This document shows, piece by piece, positions 11,449 through 59,085 of a stretch of DNA of 64,000 nucleotides. Every line of letters begins with the position of its first letter. Positions within the stretch are counted from its first letter, which is position 1. The stretch covers positions 7,988,470 to 8,052,469 of the forward strand of contig OZ316897.1 in NCBI GenBank assembly GCA_973895155.1, read 5' to 3'. The notes under the pieces were generated by a model. It worked only from the letters and a program-made list of their open reading frames with translations, made no database searches and had not been told where the DNA came from. This stretch comes from Marsupella aquatica. Taxonomy: Eukaryota > Plantae > Marchantiophyta. The position numbers and the translations under genes were made by a program.

Positions 11449-13480
11449 TTAGGTCACACCTCTATGGTATTCTATATACCGCTTCTTATACTGCTCAGGT
11501 TGCCCCTGATGCTTGACATTCTTCAGAAAAGACAACACACTTGGATCAAATCCTGGATCAAATTCTGACAAAAGAGTCACAGAGCGAGCCGGAACTTGGG
11601 GGTGGCGTAGAAGACAACATATCTCTGGAAGATGAGAACCTATACAAGGATCAAATACCACAAATCAGATGACATCGCTTCCTTTCTCATTTCATGAGTT
11701 CGCATGTTTCTGAGAATTGTGGCTAGAGTTGGAAGGGGTATTGGTTTTGTCCGATGTATAAACTTTTTCCATGTACTTATTGGGTACAGAGTGGTCTTCA
11801 AGGAGTGCAACATGAAAACAAGGTTGAAGACTTCGACGACGTTGCGGTTTGAAGCTCTGCGTTTTTCCGTTTCAGCTGAATCCAAATCATCATCATGACG
11901 ATACTCCGCCTTGAGTTGAATATTTGCACAGATCTTTCCTCTTATCAAAAAGATATGTGTGGGTTTTCAATTCCTGACAGATTATTGTGAACATGATGAC
12001 AATGTACACACCATCGGTTTCAGACAATCAAGCCGGTCGTGATCTTTCTCACTCGAGAGGTATTATTCTCTGGACACTTTATGCGTTCATGACTACGAAA
12101 CGTGGCTTCGACGTCAATAATTTCATTGGTGAGAAAATAGCATGCGTATTATAAGAAACTCGTGACTCTTGCAGGAGGCATTATAGATTTCCAAACTGTG
12201 TGCAGCAATGTGTGTCTGCAATGTTCCATGGCGATGCGTACAAAGATGTGAAGAATATGTTAAAATCAAGGCCGACAGCTAATATTCAGTTTCAAGTTTT
12301 CGGTGAAGCCACTGAAGGCAGCCCAGAGTTTTTGCTGGGTCATCCTTGTTATCAGTGTGTGCTCATTGGGTATGGGAGGTCTGGCATATATTTAAGACCA
12401 TGCAATGCAACGCTCATTGGAGAGACAGACAGCTCAAGTTTATCTTAGAGCTCTATTTCACGTCGAATTGGCAACTTCAATATTGATTTCGGGGGCTGCA
12501 TTTATTACATTCATGCCTTTGCGATGCCCCCCGACCTTCCATATCTCATAAAAGTTTGTAGGCTCCTCTACCCGGTTAAAGTTGCACTTGACCGTTGCAG
12601 CTTTGAATTGTCCCTACGTCCCTGCCTTGCCATTTCGAGTCTAATAAATCCAGGATAATTATGGGGAGTAGGTTTGATCAATTATGATAAGCAGCAAAAC
12701 ACTGGGAGTAATCCGTCCCTGCCTTGCCATTTCGAGTCTAATAAATCCAGGATAATTATGGGGAGTAGGTTTGATCAATTATGATAAGCAGCAAAACACT
12801 GGGAGTAATCATTTATGCACAGTGCTAGCGTTAGGGGTGGGAAACGTTTGTCCTTTTACTTATAAAGGATGACATACAAAGGATGACATGATTAAAGGAT
12901 GACATACAAAGGATGACATGATTGGAATAACAGGAGTTGATTCTAGTGGTATTAAATCCCAGATTGCAACTGGGTCTGGATGTCAACCATTGTTAATGGC
13001 AGTGCGGAAGTTCCTCTATGGAGTTTTGGTTCAATGATGATCTTCGTTGAGAGTAATCCCTCATAAAGTTTTCATTTGAAAGTGTCGAAGGGAAGTCATC
13101 CAATAGAGAGAGAGTTCTTAGAATTGTGGCCTTGATTAGCAGTCTTTCAACTGAGGCGATGCGTAATCAAGATTTCAAAATTTACGTCATGTGTCTTATT
13201 CGTTCAAACTGGTCCACTTTGGGGACTGTAAAAACCTGCAGAAGGCCAAGGACCTGTCCACCTCCTGCCACTTGTCAGCAAAAATCTTCAAAGTTTCATC
13301 GTCAGTTCCCTTGGATAGAAGGCCAAAAGGAAGTAAGACTCACATGCACATTGAATTTCAATTGCTCCCAAACTTCAGAGTTGCACAGGAAGCGAGCATA
13401 CCGGTTCTTGTGAGTTAATTGAGGGGTGTGAAGATGCGTACCACTTTGAAAAGCTATTCCAACCTCTTACCAGTTTTTGG
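11449..13480. pseudogene. Decayed coding-like sequence of uncertain origin (AGO-N-like on minus strand or TE-like on plus strand)
   Basis: Protein-like frames broken by stops and frameshifts on both strands; no intact model could be built. Confidence 0.25.
12617..12923. repeat. Perfect 97-bp tandem duplication plus a 30-bp duplication
   Basis: CGTCCCTGCCTTGCC...GGGAGTAATC at 12617 and 12714; AAAGGATGACATACAAAGGATGACATGATT twice at ~12863-12923. Confidence 0.95.
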
Positions 13481-13768: not shown

Positions 13769-16700
13769 CTATAGATACCACAAACGATTCCGCAAGTTAT
13801 CGTGGGCATCGATCTCCCCAAAATCATTCGTGGTGGCCGATAGATATTCCACGTATATCTTTGCTCTGAAGGCTGCAAGATGGGCGTAGTATACCGGGGT
13901 GACGAGCGACACACTCGCCGAGCTTCGCTGGAACGTCCAGCACAAGTTGTACACTAATGTGTACAGGTCATCTGGTTGCATGTCGATTTGATCCAACAAC
14001 ACATGGTAGTGTGTCGGACGGCAGGTGCCTATTCTGCACTCATGGCTGGCCAGGAAGAAGTCGTACTCTACTGGGTGTGTCACGCCATCCGCCACCACAC
14101 TTCCTTTTGGTAAGTTGGTTGGGTTGTCGGGCTGTGGGGGGGGCCTCCTCTCATCAGAGCGCCTCCTCTCATCAGCGCGTCTGTTGGGGAGCACAAAGAA
14201 TCGAGTGTGATGTCGCTTAACCTGCACGTCCGTTCATTTATTCCTCTATCCGTTAATCCGTCTATTTGTCCATTGAGCTCATTACATAATCCACATTTTC
14301 ATACATGCAATCCCAATCCGTGCTGGTTATACTTAACGTGTATGTGGCTAAGTAGAGTAAAGTATGGAAAACTGTCATATGGTGTGTTTAGTGGTTCGAG
14401 TTCAAGGATAGTCTATATTATTATTTTCGTGGCACAGGTTGGTCATTGAAGCTCAGTCAAAAGCCACTTTTAGGTCCTATGCGGCATAGCTCTTAAGAAG
14501 TTCCGACTGAAAGGTCCTGCCTTGTTGCTCTTGTGGTGTAACTAGCGTGTATGTGGCAGAGGAGAGTGAAGTCTGGAAAATTGTCATATCGAGCCAGCCA
14601 GGTGTGTTTTGCGGTTCAATTGGCCAGTGTATATATGTCCGTGGCAAAGGTACAGTAGCTCATTAAAGCTCAGACCAAGGGCAATTTCAGTTCCTAGGAA
14701 GCATAGGTTTTCAAGAGGGGTTTTTTTGTGTATTGTTGTCTCGAAAGCAATTTTTATTCGTCATCAACATTACGACCACGCAACTCATACGAGAGATTGA
14801 AGAGGTTCGTTTCATTCATGAACGCAGGTGGAAATTTTACGTTGCAGCTGGAGTGCAGGCTGGTCAGTTAAGATGCGTGTGTAGAAAGGAGACGAATTGT
14901 GCATATATGATTATAGTGAATGAAGAATGTATGCTCGTATTGACAGAAGCAAAGGCAATTGCAGTAAGAACCTACAGACATGAAGATGGGTAGAGAAAGG
15001 CTTAAAACTCACCGCCAGTATGATGGCCACTTTCGGTCTGTAAGCTCGATTTTCGTCGAGCGCTTCGGCAGCCCGCAGTATAGCAGTTCCCTCGAAGCGG
15101 AGAGTCGTGCCTATGAATTGTTCACTGACTCCGTCACGAAAGAAGAGGATATTGTCAGGATACACCCCTTCATTACCCTTATAAACCTTCAGGAGTTCTT
15201 CCACCATCTTCTGCAGGCCAACGAGTCGCTCCTCTCTGCCCTCCTGCGCTCTCAACCGAGTCGCATAATTGACGGCGCTGCCGTCCGTAGTGGCCACCAC
15301 GGCTGCGATAGAGGGCCCTCCTTCGCCGGCACCAGGATGCGTGACATCGGCTCCCATCAGAATCGTTCTGTGGCCTAAGAGCGGCATCTGGTGCCTCGAC
15401 TCTCGACTCAACTCGAAGTTGCTCCCGCCGCACTTCACGTTGATCTTCAACAGTAAATTGCTCACCCGCTTGCTTATCATGTTCTCCGAGGCGGGCAGCA
15501 CGATGACCTGCGAAGGCACGCCCTCAGTGTGATCTAGGGTGTACTTCAGCGTGGCGTACTCCGGATACATCCTTCTCTCCATGAAGCACAGGATTAGCTT
15601 CAGTCTCGGCGCCGGCTGGACTCTGCTGTACCGCTCCACCTTCGCTATGAGGTTTTTGATGTGTTTGAGGACTCGTTCTTTCTTGTGAGAAAGCGACTCT
15701 CTCTCGTCGACCTCCACTTCTTCCAGCACCACCTCTCTGCTCCATCCCATTCTGCGATCTCGAGCTCGATTTCCCAGCGCCGTGATGAAGCTGTCCATCA
15801 AGTTCCGCTTGTGAGGGCGCACGAACGAGAGAACGCCCCATAGCTGGTCGATGTTCGCGGGTTTGGCAAACTCGTTCCTGTTCGATGGCGTGAGCTTGGG
15901 GTCTGCCAGTGAGATTGTGGTCACCTCCAACATGTCTCGAAACTGAACGTTCAGACGGTACGCTTCCTCCGTCTTCGGATTTCGCCTTTCAAGCTCCCCC
16001 AATACGTAATTAATGCATGTATGTATCTATAGAGTGACTCTGTGGGTTGCGACTAAGGGGGGTTGAGGGTGGAATAATTGTAAATGGGGACTATATATGG
16101 TACTCCCCATGGTACTCACAATTTATATCATATATATCATGGGGCAATTCCAGCAACTTACTTCAAACAGGCAAATCTGGGTAGGACTATAATATGAGCC
16201 TGTCAGAAAAACAAAACACGTTTGCGTCCTTCTTTTGCAAATCAATCCCCGGGGAAAACTTTAAAATAAAAAATCGCATGTACCCTAGATTATGACACTA
16301 TGCAAAACTAAACCAAACTAAAAAAAAAAAAGGGAAGACAGTGCATAGTTACCCAGTGTCTCTTGTGTATCGATATTGTATCCACTGCAATATGCTCTTA
16401 TATCTTTGACCGACTGTTCTCTGGAGTTTCCTTTGAGCATTGTCCTCCAATTTATAGGGGAATCGTGCACCCGAATGCGTGTAGCAGGATCCCCACGGCA
16501 GAAAGTGAGGCTTGTGCTTGTGCACCTGGATTACCGGCAGTACCCCCTGCAAGCTGGCGGGCTCCAACCTATACTTCTGGACCATCAGGTCAAGCAATGA
16601 TGTGTTGGTGTTGTTCTCAAAGTCTGGCACAATCTTTGCTTCTGCTCTCTCGGCTCTCACTTTGAAAATGGAGTAGAGTTTCACCGCTTCCGTCGTCCAC

Positions 16701-19700
16701 ATGGTCTGTCTGTGCGTTGATGTGATCGTCAAGTTCCCCCAATACCGATTCACAACGTCCACCATGTCCTGGTCAAAGGAAGTGTCTTGTCGTGCAATAA
16801 AGTGCCGGAACAAATCTCTCTTCTCCTGTGGAAGAAGAGAACCCATTTCTATCATCTGGCGCCATGCATCGGACAGTTTCATCACTCGGTAGAATGGCGT
16901 TGTCATGACGTCCACGTTTAATGTCAACCCAGCTTGAAGGAGTCGGACGCTTTGGAAGTAGCCCGTCTTCCCTTCCAAGAGTGCCGACAACTGTACGTTC
17001 CTTTCAGGTGCTGGATTATCACTAACATAGAAGAAGCGGCCTGACTCGAAATAAGGTCCGTGTTCATGGATGTCTTGCCTGCAGTACTGCTTCATGATCG
17101 AGTTCCCGACCTGAACAAGGTTCTGCTTGCATGACACCACGACAACATTGATAGAATTAGACATGCTAGCTTGAAGCAAAAGTGATGTACAAGGTAAACG
17201 AGCACCCAAGCCAGTGTGCTTAGATAGTTCTCGTTTTTATCTAGCTATCGAACACAAGTGGCCCGCCATGCCTGGTGGTGTACGTTGCAGATTTATCAAG
17301 GCTTCCTTGTACCTGGACAGAACCCCACAGATCCCCGCAGCGACAAAGAGTAGGAGTGGTCTTGGAAGAATCAGATCCGGGAAAGTTGTTGGATTGATCT
17401 CGTTATACATATATACCAAACCCGGACCTACTGTTGTATAATATGTAGTCATCGTTAGATAATGCTGTGAGTGGTGATGGCTTGGAGAGTGGAGTTCTTC
17501 GCTTGTGCTGTCAATTGCCCTCACTCATCAGGAGATTATTGGTTGAGTCTGTTTCAGCACGCAGGGAACAAGAAAGTGGATCGACGCAGAAGGACTTTTC
17601 ATTTAATATGCACATTAGTTTAATTCTTCAAGCCAGGATTTATAGCAAGGTTTATGGGAGGTTAAAATTGATTCTAGGATGGATCACAAGGTCTGACCTC
17701 AGAACACATTCTTGACACAAAATGGAGGCTATCCCAATTCAAAAAATGATAAATAACTATAAGTTAGAAATGATTTATGCACATTTCGATTTACATCAAA
17801 ATTGAGAAGGTGGAGTTATGTAATCATGAAGAACTGAAGGTGAATCAAAGGAGGACCTTTGGAAATTCCAGGGGATCATCTTTAGTACTACTGCAGAGGA
17901 ATGCATCGAGTTCATTTGTCTGGACGGCCTTCTCAAATTTGATCGTGGCTTCCACCCGTTTGAACGTGGATTCGATGGGCTGATTATCAGCAGGCGAAGG
18001 TCCGAGTATAAATTTTTCAGTATCCTGAAGCCAGTTGAATTTTGTTGGCGAAATTAAAAGGGACCCGCCTTCATACACAAGGTTTTGTGTCTTAGATTTA
18101 AATTTTCCTTCTCCATCTCTTATTAATATCTTCCATAGCGCTTGCTTGACAATCTTCGGAAAACGTCGATGTTCATTTGCTGGGTCCCTCCAAGTAACTG
18201 TGTACCTATTCAGTAAAGCCATCCATCTCTGACTCCAATTAAAACACCTTCATGGAACCTGTCTTAGTTCATTGAGGGGTCCATACAAACTACAATGTTC
18301 ATTGTAATTAGGTGGTATGCAAAAATCCCCTCTACTACCAAATTAGTGTTAGTAAAACTAATTTGGTGAATCTGCCGGCATTGAGTCCAAACTAACAGTA
18401 ATTCATGTGCGCAGAAAGCAAAAATAGTGTTAATATGAGGGACTAGTGTGAGGATTAATACTAATGCATGAGTAGAGCCTTTCTGAAATTCTTTGCTCTC
18501 GAATTAGTGTCCAGTAGTCCATCTAGTCCACAAGTGTACTCATATCTACTACATTTCAAAAGTTTGCGCCGGCACAGGGTTAAGCATCCCATTTTAAAAT
18601 TCCAAGAACGTGAATAGACTTTGTTGAAGCCGTTCATAGTTATGAGTAGCCTAATAAATCTATAAATTACCTGCATTATATATTTTATACATGAATCATG
18701 AGTATTTTATATAAATCAGATGTGAATAATAATTAAAAAAATCAAGTATTCCATCACTTTTGGATGTATTTTTCTGCCCCTCCCAAGAGAGCAATTGGCT
18801 ACAATAAACACAAAAAATCAATCCATAACTTAGGTGCCATACAGATATATTTCCGTACTTAGCAGACATGCAGTGTGTAGCAGACATGCAGTGTGTTTAC
18901 ATACAAGACATTTCTCTAAGTGGATAGAGTTAAATTTAAGTGGCTGTGCTCTAACAACAAAAATGGTCCTCGTTTTCTATATCATGGACAACTTTTGTCT
19001 TTTCTCCAGACAGATCCATCCTTGAAATTTCTATTTGATAATGAATGTGCTGCCTGACTGTTGCGACTGAGTCCAATTCTTTAGTCCAACCTTCTCTCAA
19101 GACAACATTAAGTAAACTTTTCAAGATCGTAGATTATATAAAAAATCAGCTTATGGAGGCAATAATTCGTCACAAAGAGCTCAAAATCTGGGCCATAGTT
19201 AAGTTCCTTGGGTATTCCAGCATGATCATGTGGTTTGCAGTATAATGCATCTAGCAAAATGTTCACAAGATGCTGAATGGTCAACTGAACTCGCAGAAGG
19301 CACTTACCCATTAATTCATACATGGCAGTTAGTAAGGTTGAGGGACTTACAAAAAGTAAGGTGTGGGCTGGTATCTGATGACAAAGTGGTTTGCATAAAC
19401 CTTTTGGTTCAAGAGACGTGGGAATTTTGTTCTAATCCCTTTGGGCTTCATGGGTAATACAGATTTATCTTGTCTATGAGATGTAACATAGATACGTAGG
19501 TCTCTCATTAGGCGTTCCATCTCCTCCGAGTCTGCTTGCTCTGTCATTTCCTGTGATACTGCCTTCCTACCAGTGGCCTTTAGAGAATCCTTCAAACGAG
19601 TTCTCCAATAAGCTCCTCTAAAACCCTCAGCCGGGGGGAGGGGGTTGCTCGAACTTGGTAAGGATTGTATCTGACGATCTAAATTATTGAACAGAAGATT

Positions 19701-21699
19701 GTCAGGTTTATAGGGATATTTTCCTATTTGAGTACTTCCTAAGTTGTTGGTTTGACAGTGTGTTTGAATATCTTTATCCAACCAGAGCCTAAGAGAACTC
19801 TTTTTCTCTGATGCTTGGGAAAAATTCTCATCTATTTTTAGTTTAAAAGTACTCGAAATAACGTGTATTTTTTAGGCCTTTAAGTGTATTTATGCCCTCG
19901 TTTCAGGGCATTAATGTGACTCACGATGCACCGCACTGGAAGGTTGCTATACCCAAGGCCTGATGAATTTATTGGGCAACATATTTGTGCATCTCAGTAG
20001 ATGATCGCAATGGATCTAGTCAGCCCTTGGATCAGGGTGACCACTAAAGTATGGATTAGGAAAAGAAAGTGGAGCACCTAGAAGCCAGAAGCATGTACAA
20101 TGATATTTTATGTGGAGTGCAATGAAGATCTTTGGCAAAATATTTTCTAGACAGTGCATTACCAAAATAAGGTTGGGTCCTTGCTCCTGGCCCTCCTTCA
20201 GATGAGCTTCCTGGCTCAAATGCCCTGCTGTTGGAGTCCCTTCTACTAGGAGTGCCAATTCCATGCCTCAAGTCCACACGTTTATCCTCACCTCGATCCT
20301 CATCTGCAGAACAGGACTCAATGATCATATGCATTGATCATGAGCTTTTTAATTAAACAGACCCATTGTACATTGGAATTGAGTAGTTGACCCATCTTAA
20401 TGCCCTTCATGACTTTTCTCTTACTTTTCAGGGCAACATTAGAGAAGCATACACAGTGAAGATTTGGATGACTAGGTTTGGATAATCTCAATATGAAGAT
20501 TCTTCTCTGCTTTCACTAAACTCACTAAGACTACAAATCTCTTAAGTCTTTTAAGTGTATGAAGGTTCTATTACGAGAACATTATTAGCAATAATAGCCC
20601 CTCAAAAGGCGGGCTCAAGCGCTTGTTTTGGGGGCATTATGACACACACACAATGTGTGTAAACAGGGCTTAAATACAGACTCTACACATGCTCACTTTT
20701 TCATGCATACTTTTTAATTGAGTATTTAGAAAATCACTTACTGTAAAGCAGTTGGTGGTGGGGGGGGGGGGGTTTGGTCGGTTGTAACTAGAGTCAATCT
20801 TGGGGCCAGGGTAGTAAACACAGGGTTTTGGTTGTTCTGAATACAGTCGTGGAATGTTTGCCACTGGTGGCTTTGAATACAGTTGGTGTCTTTGCCACAC
20901 AGGGCTTCAATATATACACTTGGCGCACCATACCCTTACTAATTAATGACAACAGGAAAAAAAATGAATGCATTTGGCGTCTTTGCCCCATGGGGCTGTT
21001 TATACATTTGGTGCACCATTCCCTTACTACACTTGGCATTTTTGCCACAGATGGCTTTGAGTATATTGGCATCTTTGCAGCAAGGGGCTTTCAATACTTT
21101 AAATTCTTTGAAATTCAGTGTTAATAGAAATAATGACATGGAATTTCCTTCCCTCCCTCCATCCTTCCATCCACATAATTTTTGGTGGGGCCCTAATGTA
21201 ACGACCTAGAGGCCTTCACTCTAGAAGACTAGACTTTGCAATTACTTACATAGACGTAGAGCACCATGCCCTTACTAACAAGAAAGAAAAAAAATGAATA
21301 ATGAAAAAAAGGAATCAACCCCTTAGGAAAGAGATAGAAAAACGAAAAAAGCGACAAAGAAAAAGAAACACAGTGAATTGCTCTTGTCATGAGGGACTCA
21401 CCATCGTGTAACTGGCAATTGTCAAATTGAATCTGCATTCTTCGTCTTGCTTCATCGGACGCAACAACTTCACTCCTCACGTTGTTCCTGTTTGGTCGAT
21501 TGTCTTCGGCAGGTTGAGCTTGAAGACCTGGGCCGAATCCGGGAGGAAATGGCAGGTCTTGAGGAGTATCTGCGAACTGCGCGTTCGGATCTCCTGTCTG
21601 CATTTGATATCGCTCTTCTTGGATTTCTGCATCAGTCTCCACACGCCGTCGCTGTGCTGGCCGTGACGGACCAGGGTCGGGATTTCGTTTTCTGTTCAT
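13769..21699 (-). CDS. AGO: Divergent Argonaute (N-L1-PAZ-L2-MID-PIWI), ~1103 aa, 7 coding exons
   Basis: Exons 21699-21402, 20303-20163, 19678-19351, 18205-17857, 17122-16353, 15985-15013, 14221-13769 (3312 nt, all phases consistent; the 15985 acceptor is the least certain). Motifs: VYANHF...YTVTW and VYEGGSLLISP (N), GYFQSVRLLQAGLTLNVD (L1), LPVIQV...FLPWGSC (PAZ), YATLK/PSQV/NLLLKINVKCGGSN (MID), GADVTHP, QEGREE, FRDGVSE, KRHHTRFF, RPTHYHVL, PVYYAHLAAFRA (PIWI). Confidence 0.93.
14334..14718. repeat. Diverged ~209-bp tandem duplication in the last AGO intron
   Basis: CGTGTATGTGGC...GGAAAA.TGTCATAT...GTGGCA.AGGT...TCATT.AAGCTCAG at ~14334 and ~14543. Confidence 0.7.
20800..21300. repeat. 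Degenerate short repeats (MITE/TE remnant) in the first coding intron of AGO
   Basis: Recurrent TTGGC(A/G)T(C/T)TTTGCC and GCACCAT.CCCTTACTA (20925, 21013, 21261). Confidence 0.45.
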
Positions 21700-32922: not shown

Positions 32923-33372
32923 AGTTTTTGAACCTGAATCCCATTGTTTTGTGACGCATTCTTTGTAAGTGTAGCTCTTTTGGGACTCTCTAACGGTTTT
33001 TTGGGATAGGACTCGATTACAGATGGAGTTTTTGAACCTGAATCCCATTGTTTTGTGACGCATTCTTTGTAAGTGTAGCTCTTTTGGGACTCTCTAACGG
33101 TTTTTTGGGATAGGACTCGATTACAGATGGAGTTGGAGTAAAACAACTTGATCTCCGGCCTCTCACTAGCCTTGACAAAACATAGATACACCAGGTTTCA
33201 TTATATAGCCATGACAAACTCTGGATACACCAGGTTTCACTGTATAGCCATGACAAACTTTGATACACCATGCTTCACTACACAGCCATGACAAAATTTG
33301 GATACACCAGATTTCACTATATAGCCATGACGAACCCTCGATACATCAAGTGAACTCATACATCAAGTGAAC
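32923..33372. repeat. Perfect 104-bp duplication followed by a 38-39-bp minisatellite
   Basis: AGTTTTTGAACCTGAATCCC... at 32923 and 33027; GATACA(C/T)CA...ATAGCCATGAC units at 33185, 33224, 33262, 33301 and a partial unit at 33340. Confidence 0.95.
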
Positions 33373-33754: not shown

Positions 33755-35300
33755 TCTATTATAAAGAGAAGGGTATCATTTGATACTCCTGGTCAGTCAA
33801 TCCAAGAGTAGATAAAAAAACTTTAAACAAATCTGATGGCCTAGGTTGATTCCCTCCATTTTCAATTTTGTAAGCATACTAAAGAACTTTTTGGCGCCAT
33901 TGCATATTATAGAAGTAGATAAATGCATTTTCCACCCATTTAAAAACTACCAAGCTAATTAAAAAATAATTATTTTGGTTTATTAATTCATTAAAGTGTA
34001 TTATAACAATATTCATTTTTTCATTTTTGAACTATTCAAATAGCAATTTTACTTCACTCTATCTACGTAAAGTAATTAGCTTATTTGCACCCAGAATAAA
34101 ATACAACTATGGATAGATCAACGTGACATGTGAAAAATATAGAATTTATAACTTGACCAAATTTACATTTTTCTTCTCTCTCTTGCCTCATCCTTTGCTT
34201 CAGTGTGCCCTGTTGCTCATTTATGATAGTGTACTACATAAATTCCAAATGCAAGGAGAGGGGCCCTGTTGCTCATTTATGATAGTGTACTACATAAATT
34301 CCAAATGCAAGGAGAGGGTACAGCTAGGAACTGTCCTTGTGAGGTGGCAAGGCCAAGGTGGTAGCAAAGGACACAAGGAGGGAGGGCTGGCCTGTGGCAA
34401 GGGGTAGAGTCCTTGCCATTGGCAAACTATACTCCTAGCCTGGAGTACAGCCAAGACAGGGGCCCAGTAAATCCAAGACTCAAGCCTCACCCCATATTTG
34501 CTAATATATATAGTTTGCCAACTATACTATAATATTGTTGAAAGATACTGTTGAACTCAAAAAATGTTGTTGAGTAAAAGATATCATTGCACAAGTATGG
34601 GCTATGGAAACCACAAAAGCTTGACAAATAAAAAATAATGGTTTTTTTCTTAAACCTTAACCCCCACTTGTTCCCCCTTTTCAGTAGGGTATGCAAGAGG
34701 TTATGGGTTTTTTGGTCATTATTATATTCATATGCCCTTCGAGGGGCTGCCCTACATTGCGAGTGTGCCTCTAGCCCGACACCTTGCAATCAACACCCGT
34801 GTGCCATGCTCTTTACTATACCTCTGGGCATTATTGTTTTTGTTTTTTGGCATTGAAAATGACAGTGCAAATGACTGTAAAAATCACCACAAATATTGGG
34901 AGAATAGTTTTTGAATATTGATTAGTGTATGCAATACTCTATTGACTAAAATACTATCTTCAACTATAATATTAAGTGATCTTGCCTTTTTCGTCCTTCA
35001 TCCCATTATGAAATCCATAATAGGCGGGAATCAAAACTGGCCGTTAGATATTTTAGAGTATTTTTGTATTCGTTTGATTATCACTTGCCCTTTCTGACGA
35101 GGCCTCCCACTCCCGTGCCTTCATTATGGACCCCCCTCGTGATATACGTATATGGGCATCAATGCCCACAATGCCTTGCCGGCCCTCACGATGCCTCGCC
35201 CTCCCCTCGGTCCCTATGCGCTCGCCCCTGCCTCCCATCACCCGGCCCGACTCCCTATTGCCCGGCCCTCATTGCGCCGTGCAACGCACGGACATAGGGT
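33755..35300 (+). mobile_element. Probable non-autonomous Helitron
   Basis: 5' end A^TCTATTATAAAGAGAAGG at 33755; subterminal hairpin CCGTGCAACGCACGG at ~35276-35290 after a C-rich tract; terminal CTRR is degenerate. Contains a 56-bp duplication (34208 and 34264). Confidence 0.45.
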
Positions 35301-50636: not shown

Positions 50637-50718
50637 CGTGGCCGGCAGGATTCGAACCTGCGCGGGCAGAGCCCACATGATTTCTAGTCATGCCCGATAA
50701 CCACTCCGGCACGGCCAC
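50637..50718 (-). tRNA. trnS-AGA: tRNA-Ser(AGA)
   Basis: Reverse complement GTGGCCGTGCCGGAGTGGTTATCGGGCATGACT-AGA-AATCATGTGGGCTCTGCCCGCGCAGGTTCGAATCCTGCCGGCCACG: 82 nt with long variable arm; TTTT terminator at 50626-50623. Confidence 0.97.
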
Positions 50719-50723
50719 TTTAC

Positions 50724-50797
50724 TGCTTCCACTGAGAGTTGAACTCAGGACCTCCCGCTTACTAAACGGGTGCTCTAGCCAACTGAGCTATAGAAGC
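50724..50797 (-). tRNA. trnT-AGU: tRNA-Thr(AGT)
   Basis: Reverse complement GCTTCTATAGCTCAGTTGGCTAGAGCACCCGTTT-AGT-AAGCGGGAGGTCCTGAGTTCAACTCTCAGTGGAAGCA; CAA immediately upstream and a TATA-like element at about -33. Confidence 0.96.
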
Positions 50798-51208
50798 TTG
50801 CTGATGAGACGGCGAATATTTTGCAATATAGCTTATTTGGAGAGATTGTTGAAGGTGGCTTACTCCTTGCTGTCATCTCTTAGTGATCTTACCTAGTCTC
50901 TCACTTCTCAGCTATAGAAGCTTGCTGATGAGACTGTGAATGTTTTGTTATATACATTCTTTTGAGAGATTGTTGAAGGTGGCTTATTCCTTGCTGTTGT
51001 CTCTCAGTGATCATTTCTACTCTCACTTCTTAGAGACATGGCTCGACCAAGCGCGCCATTGTCATGGGCGGGATGCTCTAGCCAAGCTTGATATTGGACT
51101 TGAGAACTATTCATAACATAAAGTTTCATGGGATTGTTGAAGGTACTTGTTCCTGCTCTACCCTCTTACTGAGCTCTTACTGATCATTCCCACTCTCACT
51201 CCTCAGCT
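50786..51208. repeat. 124-bp tandem repeat of the tRNA-Thr upstream region (2 good copies, 1 diverged)
   Basis: AGCTATAGAAGCTTGCTGATGAGAC at 50786 and 50910; GATTGTTGAAGGT in all three units. Confidence 0.85.
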
Positions 51209-53038: not shown

Positions 53039-53459
53039 TGTTGGGTATTTACTCTTATGTCTAGGTTAGGTATGACGTGGTTGGTACAACAACATGGTTT
53101 GGTACAACTACGTGGTTAGGTACAACTACGTGATTAGGTACAACAATGTAGTTAGGTACAACTACGTGATTAGGTACAACAATGTGGTTAGGTTAACTAA
53201 GTTGCACACTATATCATAAGAGGCACGTGTGCTTGGAGAGGGAGAACCAAGGCTCATTGTTATGGAGCCACTTGAGAGATAGGGAGAGCTTACACTGTGG
53301 AGACTCGGTATAGCCGACGGGCTTAGAGTTCAGTAAAGCTCTCTTGTGTGTTCCCGTGGACGTAGCCTCAAGGAGGTGAACCACGTATCTCTTGTGTCGA
53401 CTACTTGCATGTTGGATATGTCATGTGCTTACCGTTGCGATTATCGTCTATACTCAATA
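53039..53459 (+). repeat. 5' LTR (421 bp)
   Basis: TGTTGGG...CTCAATA (terminal CA mutated to TA); six ~18-bp GGTTAGGTACAAC units. Confidence 0.95.
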
Positions 53460-54207: not shown

Positions 54208-57200
54208 ATGAGTGACTTGGAGGAGGGTTCTATTGAGTCACCGGAGAGAACAGAGGAGGAAGCAGAAGATCTAGCGGAATTGTGGTCACCGGTATTGCGG
54301 CAAGTGACAAGAAAAAGGATGGGGACAATCAAGCTTGGAGGTCCCAAGTTTGAGGTTACGAAATACGATGGCCGCATGGACTACTTGTTGTGGGAGCGAC
54401 AAGTGAAGGGGGTACTCCGTGCGACCGGGCTTGGGAAATTGCTGAAAGACCAGCCAAATGATGTCGACAATGATGATTGGCAGGACATGTAGGAGCAGGC
54501 TGTGAGCATCGTGATGCTCTATCTTCAGCCTAATGTCATCAAGCAATTGGCAGACCATGTCAATTGTGCATCATTGTTTACCGCGTTGGAGCAAAAGTAC
54601 CATCAAAAGGAGCTATCGAATCGGCTCTACACATCTTTGAAGCTTATGAGCTTCAAGATGAAGGAGGGAAGTGCAAAGATTCAGGACCATATTGATGGTT
54701 TCAACGACCTGGTCGTTGATTTGCAAAATCTGGGGGAGGATTTGAGTGATGAGCGGCAGGCTCTTCACTTGCTTAGCTCTTTACCCTTGTCGTATCAGTC
54801 ATTGTCACGAGTGCTGCTTCATCATGACAGGAAGACTATCACTTACAATGAAGTTGTAAGTGCTCTGTTGACTGATGACTTGCAGCAGAAATTGACCATG
54901 CCCTCTCAGCCATCATCGTCGTCTGGTGCTGCCTTGAATGTGAATCGTGGGAGGTCACAGAAGCATCCAGAGCACCACATGAATGGCAGGGGAAGAAGTA
55001 AATCTAGGACAAGATTTGCTTCAAGGGGGAAGTCCCAAGAGAAGAAGCCGGTGGTATGCTGGAAGTGTGGCAAGACTGGCCACATTAAGAGGGATTGTAA
55101 GGGTAAGGCAGCTGAATCTTCATTAGCCAATGTGGCTAGTGTTGATGGAGAAGTTGATTTACTCAACGATGAGTATGTTTTATGAAGTCAGGAGTATGCC
55201 CTATGCACATCATCTGGAGAGTAAATGATGTGTGGATTCTTGATTGTGCTTGCTCCTTTCACATTTGTTACATTCGCGAGTATTTCAATTCTTATTCTAT
55301 GTCAAACGGTTCAATTTTGATGGGAAATGATCACTCCTGTCAAGTTGAGGGTATTGGGTCTGTAAAGATTCAAATGTTTGATGGCATTGTGCGCACAGTG
55401 TCCGGAGTCAGGTTCATACCTGGCATGCGTAAGAATTTGATTTCACTCGGTGTGTTGGATACAAATGGTCATCAATGGCGAGTAATTGATGGTGAACTTC
55501 AAGTCATCGGGAGAGACAGTGATTTTGAAGGGGCGCAGACAAAAGAATTTGTATGTGTTGTAGGGCAATACAATATGTGGAGAAACCAATATGACCAAGT
55601 CTCACGAGGAAATGACTCAACTGTGGCATTCATGGCTAGGCCACATGAGTGAGAAGGGTTTGGCTATCTTGCAGAAGAATGGGCTCATTTCTGATTTACA
55701 GTCTTGTAAATTGGATTTATGTGAACATTGCATTTTTGAAAAACAGCATCGTCGTGCTTTCGGTGTTGGAACTCATCATTCCAAAGCGGTTCTTGAGTAC
55801 ATACATAGTGACGTGTGGGGACCATCCTCGACTCCCTCACATTCTGGAAAATTGTACTATGTATCCTTTATTGACGATTACTCAAGATTTGTACGGATTT
55901 ATTTCATGACGCATAAGTCTGATGTCTTCTCCATTTTTACAAAGTGGAAGGCCCAAGTAGAGAATCAGACAAGAAACACGATTAAGTATTTGGATACAAG
56001 GGTGAAGAGTCTAAGGTCAGACAACGGCGGGGAGTACACTTCAATAGAATTTGAAGAGTACTGTGCAGAACAGGGGATAACTCGTCATCTCACCACAGTT
56101 TATACTCCACAGCAGAATGGTGTAGCTGAGAGGCTCAATCGAACACTATTGGAGCGGTCACGGAGTATGCTGAGCCAATCAGGTTTACCACAGGAATTTT
56201 GGGCAGAAGCTATCAATACTGCAGCTTATTTGGTAAATCTTTCTCCTTCTAGTGCAATCAATTTCAAAACGCCGTTTGAAATGCGTTATAAGCGGCAAGC
56301 AGACTATCATGGCTTGGTAGTTTTTGGAAGTGATGCATATGCTCTCACACCAAAGCAGAATAAGACCAAGTTGGATCCTACGTCCAAGAAATGTATTTTT
56401 CTTGGGTATCAGAGTGGTGTGAAGGCCTACAGGTTATGGGATCCTATTGCCTGTAAGCTCGTTGTTAGTAGGGATGTTTCTTTCAATGAATCCAGATTAT
56501 TGAAGGAGGGGGAGAATACTCAGGTCTCCCGTACTGACAAAGGAAAATCTCCTATCCCGGATCTCGTTGAGGGGGAGATTGATCATGAAGTGCATGATCG
56601 GAGAGAAGGAGGTGCTCCAAGCATGGAGCTGGTTCCTGTGCCAGAGGAACAAAAGGAGTTTATTGATGCTGGTGAGCAGCAAATGGATGTTGCTGAGCTT
56701 CAAATTATACCAGTAGACCCAATTCAACCGGAGTCATCGACTAGAAGAACATCTGGTCGTACTGTACGCGCTCCTCCTAGGTATGGACAGTGGGTTGATT
56801 CATCTCAACTGCAAGAGGATGATTTTGCAGCTGATGATGAGGGTGATCCGTTAATTTTGGAAGAAGAGGAACCTTCTTCATTTAATGAGGCAAGTGCTTC
56901 AAAGGAGAAGCAGAAGTGGACTGCATCAATGCAAACGGAGATGCAGTCACTAAAGGACAACAAAACTTGGGAGCTTGTTAAGCTGCCTAAGGGTCAGCAA
57001 GTGGTGGACAGCAAGTGGATTTACAAGCTGAAGGATAATTCCATAGGAGGTGGATCGAAGGTCTACAAGGCTAGGTTGGTAGCAAAGGGATTCACACAAG
57101 AGAAAGGTGTGGATTACAATGAGGTCTTCTCACCAGTTGCTAAATACTCTACAATACGACTATTGTGTGTACTTGTTGTAATGTTTGGTCTGCTGCTAGA

Positions 57201-58455
57201 TCAGATGGATGTTGTCACAGCTTTCCTCTATGGCACCTTGGAAGAGGTGATCTTCATGAGACAACCGCTAGGTTTTGTGAAGAGAGGACAGGAGGAATTG
57301 GTTTGCAGATTGCTGAAATCCTTGTATGGGTTGAAGCAGTCACCAAGATAGTGGAACAAGCGGTTTGACGATTGGATTCGGTCACAAGGTTTTCACAGAA
57401 GTGTATTTGACCGTTGTGTATATTTAAAACCGGTGAAGAATGTTGTCTTTGGGTTCATTGTTTTAGTACTTTATGTGGATGACATGCTTATTGCGGCCAA
57501 GGATAGGTCTGAGATTGTTAAGCTTAAGGCACTGCTCAGTGCAGAGTTTAAGATGAAGGACCTAGGGCCAGCTAAGAGGATTTTGGCTATGGAGATCACT
57601 AGGGACTTGGAGGCTAGTAAGCTATGGTTGACACAGAGCAGTTATGCGAGGAAGGTAATTGCTAGGTTCAACATGGGGGATAGCAAGCCAGTAAGTACCC
57701 ATTTGGCTGCACACTTCAAATTATCATAAGCTTTCTGTCCCACAGATTTGACAGAGAAGGGGCTGATGTCAAAGGTTCTTTATGATAAGGCAGTGGGAAC
57801 TCTCATGTATTTGATGACTTGCACTAGACCTGATCTTGCCATGGCTATGGGCAAGGTGAGTAGGTACATGTCAAATCCAGGGAAGGTACATTGGGAAGTA
57901 GTGAAGTGGATTATCAGGTACTTGAAGGGTACCGTGGATCATGGTCTTTTATTTGATGCGAATGCAAAGAATGCTAGATCATTGATTGGCTATGTAGATT
58001 TTGACTATGGACAAGATTTGGACCGAAGGAGATCAACAACAGGATACGTGTTCACACTTGGCGGTGGATGCATAAGTTGGAGGTCTACTTTGCAGAAGTG
58101 TATTGCTCAGTCTACTACAGAAGCGGAGTATGTTGCAGCTGCGAAAGCAGCAAAGGAAGCGATTTGGTTGGATAGACTTATCACTGAAATGGGATTGCCA
58201 CAGGGGAATGTAAAGCTCCATTGTGATAGTCAAAGTGCGCTCCACCTTGCTGTGAACCAGGTGATGGACAACAAAGTGAAGCACATTGATGTCAGGTACC
58301 ATTTTATCAGGCAGGGTGTGTTTGATAATTTGTTTGAGCTAGTCAAGATTGATGGTAAACTCAACCCGGCTGACGCATTTACCAAAGTGATTCTTTTGGA
58401 GAGTTTCTCTAGACACCATGACGTATTGCAGGTTTTGCAATTGCATCACAAGTAG
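54208..58455 (+). pseudogene. Copia gag-pol, disrupted
   Basis: Motifs CWKCGKTGHIKRDC, WILDCAC, HSWLGH..CEHC, RSDNGGEY, QNGVAER, KARLVAKG, QMDVVTAFL, YVDDML, EAEY, HIDVRYHF. Stops at 54490, 55183, 57349 and 57727; frameshifts near 55215 and 55510-55565. Confidence 0.95.
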
Positions 58456-58645: not shown

Positions 58646-59085
58646 TGTTGGGTATTTACTCTTATGTCTAGGTTAGGTATGACGTGGGTTGGTACAACAA
58701 CGTGGGTTGGTACAACTACGTGATTAGGTACAACTACGTGATTAGGTACAACTACGTGATTAGGTACAACAATGTGGTTAGGTACAACTACGTGATTAGG
58801 TACAACAATGTGGTTAGGTTAACTAAGTTGCACACTATATCATAAGAAGCACGTGTGCTTGGAGAGGGAGAACCAAGGCTCATTGTTATGGAGCCACTTG
58901 AGAGATAGGGAGAGTTTACACTGTGGAGACTCGGTATAGCCGACGGGCTTAGAGTTCAGTAAAGCTCTCTTGTGTGTTCCCGTGGACGTAGCCTCAAGGA
59001 GGTGAACCACATATCTCTTGTGTCGACTACTTGCATGTTGGATATGTCATGTGCTTACCATTGCGATTATCGTCTATACTCAACA
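58646..59085 (+). repeat. 3' LTR (440 bp)
   Basis: TGTTGGG...CTCAACA; seven ~18-bp units. Confidence 0.95.

Follow-up and report, generated by a model that had tools for sequence, protein, structure and literature searches.

A highly divergent Argonaute gene of the liverwort Marsupella aquatica, best placed in a bryophyte AGO2/7-like lineage

We analysed a stretch of 64,000 nucleotides (nt) of the liverwort Marsupella aquatica (GenBank assembly GCA_973895155.1, contig OZ316897.1, positions 7,988,470 to 8,052,469 of the forward strand), to which we refer as the window. On its minus strand, a chain of long open reading frames (ORFs) at 13769-21699 forms an intron-containing Argonaute gene. It had been noticed in an earlier annotation of the letters of the window made without database searches (the sequence-only reading), which described a slicer-competent Argonaute that is highly divergent and either lineage-specific or horizontally acquired. 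The gene, its exons and one further exon candidate are as follows:

13769..21699, minus strand: whole Argonaute gene from putative ATG to stop codon, six exons; from ORFs, Pfam matches, splice sites and homology to the Calypogeia protein P0153
21402..21699, minus strand: exon 1 (putative), ATG at 21699, 99 codons plus 1 nt, donor GTGAGT; open frame and splice signal only
19351..19678, minus strand: exon 2 (putative), start of the N domain with ANHF motif at 19383-19394, donor GTAAGT; three acceptors are in frame, of which that at 19678 is best
17857..18247, minus strand: exon 3, N domain with a weak ArgoN match; 3' end at 17857 (...FPK, followed by gt) fixed by homology
16353..17125, minus strand: exon 4, linker L1, remodelled PAZ and start of L2; ArgoL1 match, start near 17125 set by homology
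15013..15985, minus strand: exon 5, MID and first two thirds of PIWI; Piwi match, both junctions are Calypogeia exon c boundaries
13769..14221, minus strand: exon 6, last third of PIWI, from VKRHHTRFF to the C-terminus ...LRNRLWYL; Piwi match, stop codon at 13769-13771
18993..19095, minus strand: candidate mini-exon (from the sixth intron of the sequence-only reading), probably not an exon; poor donor (GTTGTC), would duplicate an HY.V-type N-domain motif of exon 3

The resulting model has six exons and five introns and encodes ~1057-1071 amino acids (aa). The range covers the acceptor of exon 3, for which four positions (18247, 18232, 18226 or 18205) are available that all stay in frame; since the LNRY motif is conserved, the acceptor is expected upstream of it. 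For exon 4, alternative acceptors are found at 17122 or 17218. The 3' part of the model is tied to a relative, i.e., protein P0153 of the leafy liverwort Calypogeia fissa, which maps to its own genome in four exons. Their boundaries coincide with three junctions of the window gene, namely the one after FPK (17857), the L2/MID junction (16353 to 15985) and the one between IILA and V. The latter joins exons 5 and 6 by a GTGAGT donor and a CAG acceptor such that ...IILA is continued by VKRHHTRFF, and both contigs from the Sequence Read Archive (SRA; Logan assemblies) run on into an intron directly after IIL/IA, as do the window and Calypogeia. Exon 6 bears a 16-residue Arg-rich insert that is absent from Calypogeia.

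The 5' part is more tentative. Beyond open frame and splice signals, exon 2 is backed by its ANHF motif, and in Calypogeia a matching ANHF-bearing ORF lies upstream of the annotated start. For the putative exon 1, no homologue was found. It encodes the start MNRKRN...RRR, which includes a pattern resembling a bipartite nuclear localisation signal (RKR-x11-RRR, 21643-21693). This pattern in a putative exon is the sole basis on which the protein had been called probably nuclear, such that a nuclear localisation is a candidate property at best. The sequence-only reading had furthermore counted six coding introns. The three introns at the 3' end are borne out by the Calypogeia homology, while the sixth intron and the mini-exon at ~18993-19095 find no support: the donor is poor, an N-domain motif would be duplicated, and in Calypogeia the ANHF ORF is directly followed by the LNRY ORF with no counterpart of the mini-exon detected. 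For these reasons, five introns are more likely than six.

Next, we considered the family to which the gene belongs. Searches, folds and trees used single-exon translations, and the full-length Calypogeia protein P0153 carried the respective group across both PIWI exons. Pfam reports ArgoN with 27 bits (weak, below the cut-off), ArgoL1 (E 1e-12) and a Piwi domain that is split over two exons, which cover profile positions 1-192 (E 1.9e-33) and 196-298 (E 3.3e-33). When the MID-PIWI exon is compared with solved structures, human AGO2 ranks first (E 1.3e-24), followed by Arabidopsis AGO10 (7e-18), yeast and Neurospora AGOs (~1e-10) and proteins of the PIWI clade (8e-10 or worse). Because the score of human AGO2 (E ~1e-24) contrasts with values of ~1e-9 for PIWI proteins, the gene is by sequence similarity an AGO-type Argonaute and not a member of the PIWI subfamily. 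That is, the PIWI-clade proteins Siwi, Piwi-A and MILI share the overall Argonaute architecture, but their matches are much weaker (E 1e-9 to 1e-7 vs. 1e-24 for the AGO clade). The suggested correspondence to PIWI-named AGOs of liverworts is not supported: the structure-based scores rule out the PIWI subfamily, and the name 'MpPIWI' was not found in a literature search. Human AGO2 (PDB 4OLA and others) is ~40% identical over the PIWI core and has the same catalytic tetrad and the same 5'-phosphate pocket. It is from another kingdom and is only the top score among solved structures; the trees do not join the window gene to animal AGOs, save for a long-branch attraction to a sponge sequence described below.

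The catalytic tetrad DEDH aligns with those of human AGO2 and plant AGOs. Its codons are found at 15346-15348 (D), 15229-15231 (E), 15133-15135 (D) and 13880-13882 (H). Likewise, the pocket for the 5' phosphate in MID (Y-K-Q-K-K) is intact, with Y at 15556-15558, K at 15544-15546, Q at 15508-15510 and the K..K pair within 15433-15447. The pocket motifs PEYATLK, PSQV and LLKINVK align with the canonical pocket columns, though no Pfam match to ArgoMid is obtained even at E=5. As the window copy is open throughout (~1060 codons in six exons), offers usable splice sites and keeps all catalytic and pocket residues, we regard the Argonaute gene as real and apparently intact. This agrees with the earlier description of a slicer-competent Argonaute at this place. 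To judge from these residues, the protein would probably take up small RNAs with a 5' phosphate and could cut RNA complementary to them.

Around these conserved residues, many signatures of plant AGOs are altered. The translations contain ILMGADVTHPG, FRDGVSEQF, SHECRIGT, SLVTPVYYAH and the C-terminus ...LRNRLWYL, and within exon 5 (15265-15300) the site PSIAAVVATTDGSAVNY, in which the W of the plant (D/N)WP motif is missing. Every odd motif listed by the sequence-only reading is therefore present. The window gene has SEQF in place of SEGQF, and it shares VKRHH in place of QKRHH(TR) with its closest relatives.

These relatives are few. An exhaustive HMMER scan of 1.84 billion representative proteins returned only three matches below 1e-30. 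The best of these is an unnamed protein of Calypogeia fissa (42% identical), and a 199-residue fragment from an SRA contig is 58% identical to the window gene. A word-index search added a fuller second Calypogeia copy (P0153, 804 aa), which includes the last exon and the odd C-terminus LRN.LW(F/Y)L common to the window gene, as well as another SRA contig. In the following, we refer to the window gene, the Calypogeia proteins P0153 and P0001 and the Logan contig proteins P0154 and P0002 as clade X. Beyond this clade, scores fall to E ~1e-23, where fern, Glomeromycota, AGO7 and insect proteins are mixed; in a BLASTP search with exon 5, AGOs of Rhizophagus, Glomus and chytrids rank directly after clade X. 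No Marchantia protein is among the matches, though AGO1 of Marchantia paleacea is part of the searched collection. With close relatives restricted to Calypogeia fissa proteins and two SRA contigs, and with several signatures found throughout streptophyte AGOs missing, the gene is indeed highly divergent and lineage-specific. The substitutions specific to the clade are conserved between species that are ~40-58% identical. In the database, the Calypogeia proteins carry the name 'unnamed protein product'.

The most altered domain is PAZ. Neither PAZ nor ArgoL2 is matched by Pfam even at E=5, which holds for the window gene and Calypogeia alike, as does the missing ArgoMid match. An AlphaFold2 model of exon 4 reaches a predicted local distance difference test (pLDDT) score of 85.9 and a predicted template modelling (pTM) score of 0.81, with an input alignment that included canonical AGOs. 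In Foldseek, it superposes on L1-PAZ-L2 of human AGO1/2/3 over ~260 columns with a query-based template modelling score (TMq) of 0.6-0.7. Canonical AGOs provide 43 columns that are conserved in 80% or more of 17 sequences, and the window gene keeps 21 of these. The altered positions include the aromatic YF pair, one conserved F and the PME of LPMExC, and the substitutions R to V, F to V/L, YF to L/M and PME to PWG are common to the three clade X members compared. Because the changes are conserved within clade X, the comparison indicates that PAZ is remodelled and constrained rather than decayed, which suggests an altered holding of the guide 3' end. The 'full domain set' that had been ascribed to the protein is to be read with a caveat: PAZ, ArgoL2 and ArgoMid are without Pfam match, and the PAZ fold is a prediction of the structural model.

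To place clade X, 65 MID-PIWI sequences were aligned with L-INS-i, with the exon translations added as fragments, and trees were inferred under LG+C20 with posterior mean site frequencies (PMSF) by a careful maximum likelihood (ML) search. Based on exon 5 alone (333 columns), clade X is recovered with support of 100/99 and is sister to the AGO2/7-like proteins of Physcomitrium and Sphagnum (98/98), both within an AGO2/3/7 superclade of 28 sequences (93/95). When P0153 is used to span both exons (482 columns), the respective values are 100/100 for clade X, 98/98 for the moss sister group and 95/89 for the superclade. The order within the latter tree, i.e., (mosses+liverworts),(lycophytes,(ferns,seed plants)), is that of the species tree. 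The tree of exon 6 alone (151 columns) points to the AGO2/7 side as well: here, Calypogeia and the window gene are found together with AGO2/7-like genes of ferns and two unnamed proteins of plant type.

The moss sister group consists of A0A7I4BJB0 of Physcomitrium patens (presumably Pp3c17_350 of the literature) and proteins of Sphagnum compactum and S. jensenii (P0022, P0312). Moss proteins and clade X have in common VKCGG, Q-V-(V/I/L) in place of QCC, the preserved DEDH tetrad and long, fast-evolving branches. In contrast to clade X, where all of these are lost or changed, the moss proteins keep a PAZ that is detectable by Pfam, (D/N)WP and QKRHHTR. The C-terminal Cys is kept in Sphagnum, while Physcomitrium ends in Leu and clade X in LW(F/Y)L, and the identity between mosses and clade X over L1-PAZ is only ~20%.

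The seed-plant AGO2, AGO3 and AGO7 proteins fall into the same superclade of the ML trees. Their genes have few introns, with AGO7 showing a phase-2 L2/MID intron like the window gene, and PVYYA(H/D) is common to the window gene and seed-plant AGO2/3. AGO2/3 typically have DDD, or D at the last catalytic position, where the window gene has H. AGO7 evolves slowly and is dedicated to miR390. Compared to seed-plant AGO2/3/7, clade X differs in two extra introns (after FPK and between IILA and V), the remodelled PAZ and its C-terminus. In the window gene, the phase-2 L2/MID intron (splitting GG and G) is located seven codons upstream of the aligned EF..V motif; in Capsella AGO7 and the Selaginella protein P0151, which falls on the AGO2/7 side, a phase-2 intron is found five codons upstream. 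Given the variable length of this linker, the intron is compatible with, but no proof of, a position shared with AGO7 and lycophyte genes. The other two clade X introns backed by homology (after FPK and between IILA and V) are absent from Capsella AGO7 and Selaginella P0151.

Taken together, we consider it most plausible, with a probability of about 0.6, that the window contains a nuclear, vertically inherited liverwort gene and that clade X, to which it belongs, is a fast-evolving and so far undescribed branch of liverworts within the AGO2/7-like lineage of bryophytes. The AGO2/7-like placement is the best-supported reading of the alignments but not proven. In published surveys, the bryophyte members of AGO2/3/7 are only the Physcomitrium and Sphagnum genes, with no liverwort member (bioRxiv 10.1101/090647; bioRxiv 10.1101/2022.01.18.476847). 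AGO2/7-like genes are reported there for mosses, lycophytes and ferns and, according to Marchantia genomes and transcriptomes, none for liverworts (bioRxiv 10.1101/2022.01.18.476847; bioRxiv 10.1101/090647); the Marchantia literature names AGO1, AGO4 and AGO9 only.

A number of observations weigh against this reading. First, the placement is sensitive to sampling: when the mosses are removed and the long-branch outgroups are kept, clade X shifts to a sponge AGO, and the branch of clade X is long, as is that of the moss clade. We read this shift as long-branch attraction. Second, the alignment includes no more than two or three sequences of AGO4/6/9, which sit on long branches (AGO4A/AGO6 of Selaginella plus an unnamed relative). 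Third, approximately unbiased (AU) tests reject neither a clade X that is kept out of the AGO2/7 superclade (cost of 12.1 log-likelihood units (lnL), p-AU 0.13) nor one that is kept out of the combined plant AGO1/5/10 and AGO2/7 group (12.0 lnL, p-AU 0.12). Fourth, the one-residue insertion of (D/N)WP after IAAVV is absent from all clade X members. It is present in all other streptophyte AGOs aligned (AGO1/5/10, AGO2/3/7, AGO4, Closterium and the moss sisters) and absent from animal, fungal and oomycete AGOs; its lack is a real character against a simple nesting in plant AGO2/7. Fifth, clade X ends in LRN.LW(F/Y)L and not in the streptophyte M(F/Y)(F/Y)C, i.e., the terminal Cys is missing. Finally, only four sequencing runs were found to contain the locus, none of which is recorded as RNA, and the contigs that match it are DNA that spans the introns without splice joints.

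Much of this would also be expected if clade X were an independent, ancient fourth clade of land-plant Argonautes that survived only in some liverworts, possibly with the moss genes as further members, such that the grouping with mosses results from long-branch attraction. The unrejected exclusion from AGO2/7 and the altered placement when mosses are removed are in line with this view, as is the lack of the (D/N)WP insertion, the QCC motif and the terminal Cys in clade X. Furthermore, the best matches outside the clade score alike and are a mixture of proteins from nematodes, lycophytes, fungi and chytrids. On the other hand, the moss sister group obtains its 98/98 under a mixture model built to resist long-branch attraction, and the topology is congruent with the species tree. 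The last exon by itself lies on the AGO2/7 side, and so does clade X when mosses and long-branch outgroups are both removed (98). We thus consider a separate fourth clade unlikely, albeit to be taken seriously. The earlier claim that the gene defines a lineage outside the three canonical plant clades is accordingly disfavoured but not refuted, since the ML trees place it inside AGO2/3/7 while the AU tests leave its exclusion unrejected and (D/N)WP is missing.

Another explanation concerns the window copy rather than the clade, namely that it was inactivated recently or is silent. It would then be the unexpressed remnant of a family that is dying out, and no pathway would depend on it. The family does contain broken copies. 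In Calypogeia, the copy of P0001 (locus L002, CBCUJL010000032.1; L002:10001-13626) has an in-frame stop in its L1-PAZ exon, and its last PIWI exon was not found within 10 kb downstream; because of both, we regard this copy as a pseudogene and did not use it by itself. A second, related organism (organism B; runs X3 and X4, DNA contigs) carries a ~95% variant of the window gene with differences at 15567-15846 and 17870-17885. Its listed exonic differences comprise 19 nonsynonymous and 3 synonymous changes and include a stop codon (CGA to TGA) at 15675 (G>A on the plus strand). In run X3, the ~95% variant occurs beside contigs identical to the window. Besides these broken relatives, the missing RNA run among the four runs that contain the locus and the lack of a close match from the annotated Marchantia proteomes searched would fit a silent relic. 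In contrast, the window copy itself is open over all its exons with usable splice sites and complete catalytic and pocket residues, and the clade-specific substitutions persist between species. Moreover, between the two Calypogeia copies, dS is 0.076 and dN is 0.026 (synonymous and nonsynonymous divergence), i.e., omega is 0.35 over 667 codons despite one partner being a pseudogene. The family duplicates and decays, while each species has at least one copy that looks constrained, and we judge a silent window copy to be improbable.

The proposal that the gene was acquired horizontally, e.g., by a liverwort ancestor from a fungus such as a Mucoromycota/Glomeromycota symbiont or from another non-plant eukaryote with introns gained later, can draw on the exon 5 ranking of Rhizophagus, Glomus and chytrid AGOs just past the clade and on the missing W insertion, which is the fungal and animal state, but is very improbable given that no tree placed clade X with fungi, that forcing it to group with Mucoromycota/Glomeromycota/chytrid AGOs costs 18.2 lnL for exon 5 (p-AU 0.054) and 24.8 lnL for the 482 columns (p-AU 0.047), by which a fungal grouping is rejected only marginally, that the gene has five or six spliceosomal introns of which one is compatible with the AGO7/lycophyte intron, and that no flanking terminal inverted repeat (TIR) or long terminal repeat (LTR) was found for this locus of single-copy DNA depth.

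The same data bear on whether the gene could be cargo of a transposon or virus. Within 1-40000 of the window, no inverted repeats or flanking direct repeats of at least 60 nt were found, i.e., no TIR or LTR bounds the gene. In run X1, the locus is covered by one contig with uniform depth, as for a single-copy region, and synteny with Calypogeia shows nothing conserved but the AGO gene and an unrelated Copia element. We rejected transposon or virus cargo on account of the lack of bounding repeats in this range, the single-copy depth and the lack of conserved neighbours.

Under the reading of clade X as a liverwort branch of the AGO2/7-like lineage, the MID pocket would hold the 5' phosphate of the guide and the DEDH tetrad would cleave complementary RNA, while PAZ would keep its fold but bind the guide 3' end in a different manner. 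A role in defence against viruses or transposons, comparable to that of AGO2, would fit better than a conserved developmental role like that of AGO7-miR390, because of the rapid divergence, the missing annotated Marchantia match, the duplication and the broken copies in relatives. Rapid evolution, duplication and repeated breakage of the family are what is expected of a defence component. A further-reaching variant, which we regard as doubtful, is that clade X, alone or with the moss AGO2/7-like genes, forms a fourth, bryophyte-only lineage whose PAZ and C-terminus reflect a different guide (in its 3'-end chemistry or length) and whose defence pathway was lost in Marchantia.

As far as sequence comparison can tell, the locus and its Calypogeia relatives indicate that AGO2/7 has a relative in at least some liverworts that is very divergent and apparently slicer-competent, unlike what is stated in the published surveys. 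If true, 'liverworts lack AGO2/7' would have to be replaced by 'Marchantia lost it'. Given the structural model, clade X would also be a natural example of an Argonaute with a rebuilt PAZ pocket next to an intact 5' pocket and catalytic centre.

Some names in the sequence collections are at odds with the trees. P0358, called 'Amborella AGO7' in UniRef, falls into AGO1/5/10, and P0151, called 'Selaginella argonaute 1', falls on the AGO2/7 side. The Logan proteins P0006 (1012 aa) and P0147 (834 aa) are plant-type AGOs with DWP and the ends MFFL/MFFI. They form a long branch beside the fern AGO2/7-like genes and, in the tree of the last exon, lie closest to clade X.

Within intron 2 of the Argonaute gene, one repeat was located:

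18331..18370, no strand assigned: short dispersed repeat; several unrelated contigs of runs X1, X3 and X4 match this stretch only

Elsewhere in the window, an LTR retrotransposon of the Copia type occupies 54502-58455 (plus strand), with ORFs for gag, zinc knuckle, integrase and RVT_2. It is flanked by the same 18-mer tandem array at 53075-53193 and 58691-58819, which is probably part of the LTRs. Related Copia elements adjoin both Calypogeia AGO copies; the one at L002:15284-19874 starts ~1.7 kb after the MID-PIWI exon of the P0001 copy. Two-copy tandem duplications of 97, 104 and 56 bp, each 100% identical, are located at 12617-12810, 32923-33134 and 34207-34318, the first of them ~1 kb downstream of the AGO stop codon; such perfect duplications are either very recent events or assembly artefacts. 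Two tRNA genes (50637-50718 and 50724-50797, minus strand; 58 and 65 bits with Rfam) are 5 bases apart, and a 124-bp two-copy repeat (50786-51030) begins inside the second one. Finally, a 197-bp unit (89% matches) occurs five times in tandem at 1299-2283, where the G+C content of the window is highest (55%, with a strong AT skew).

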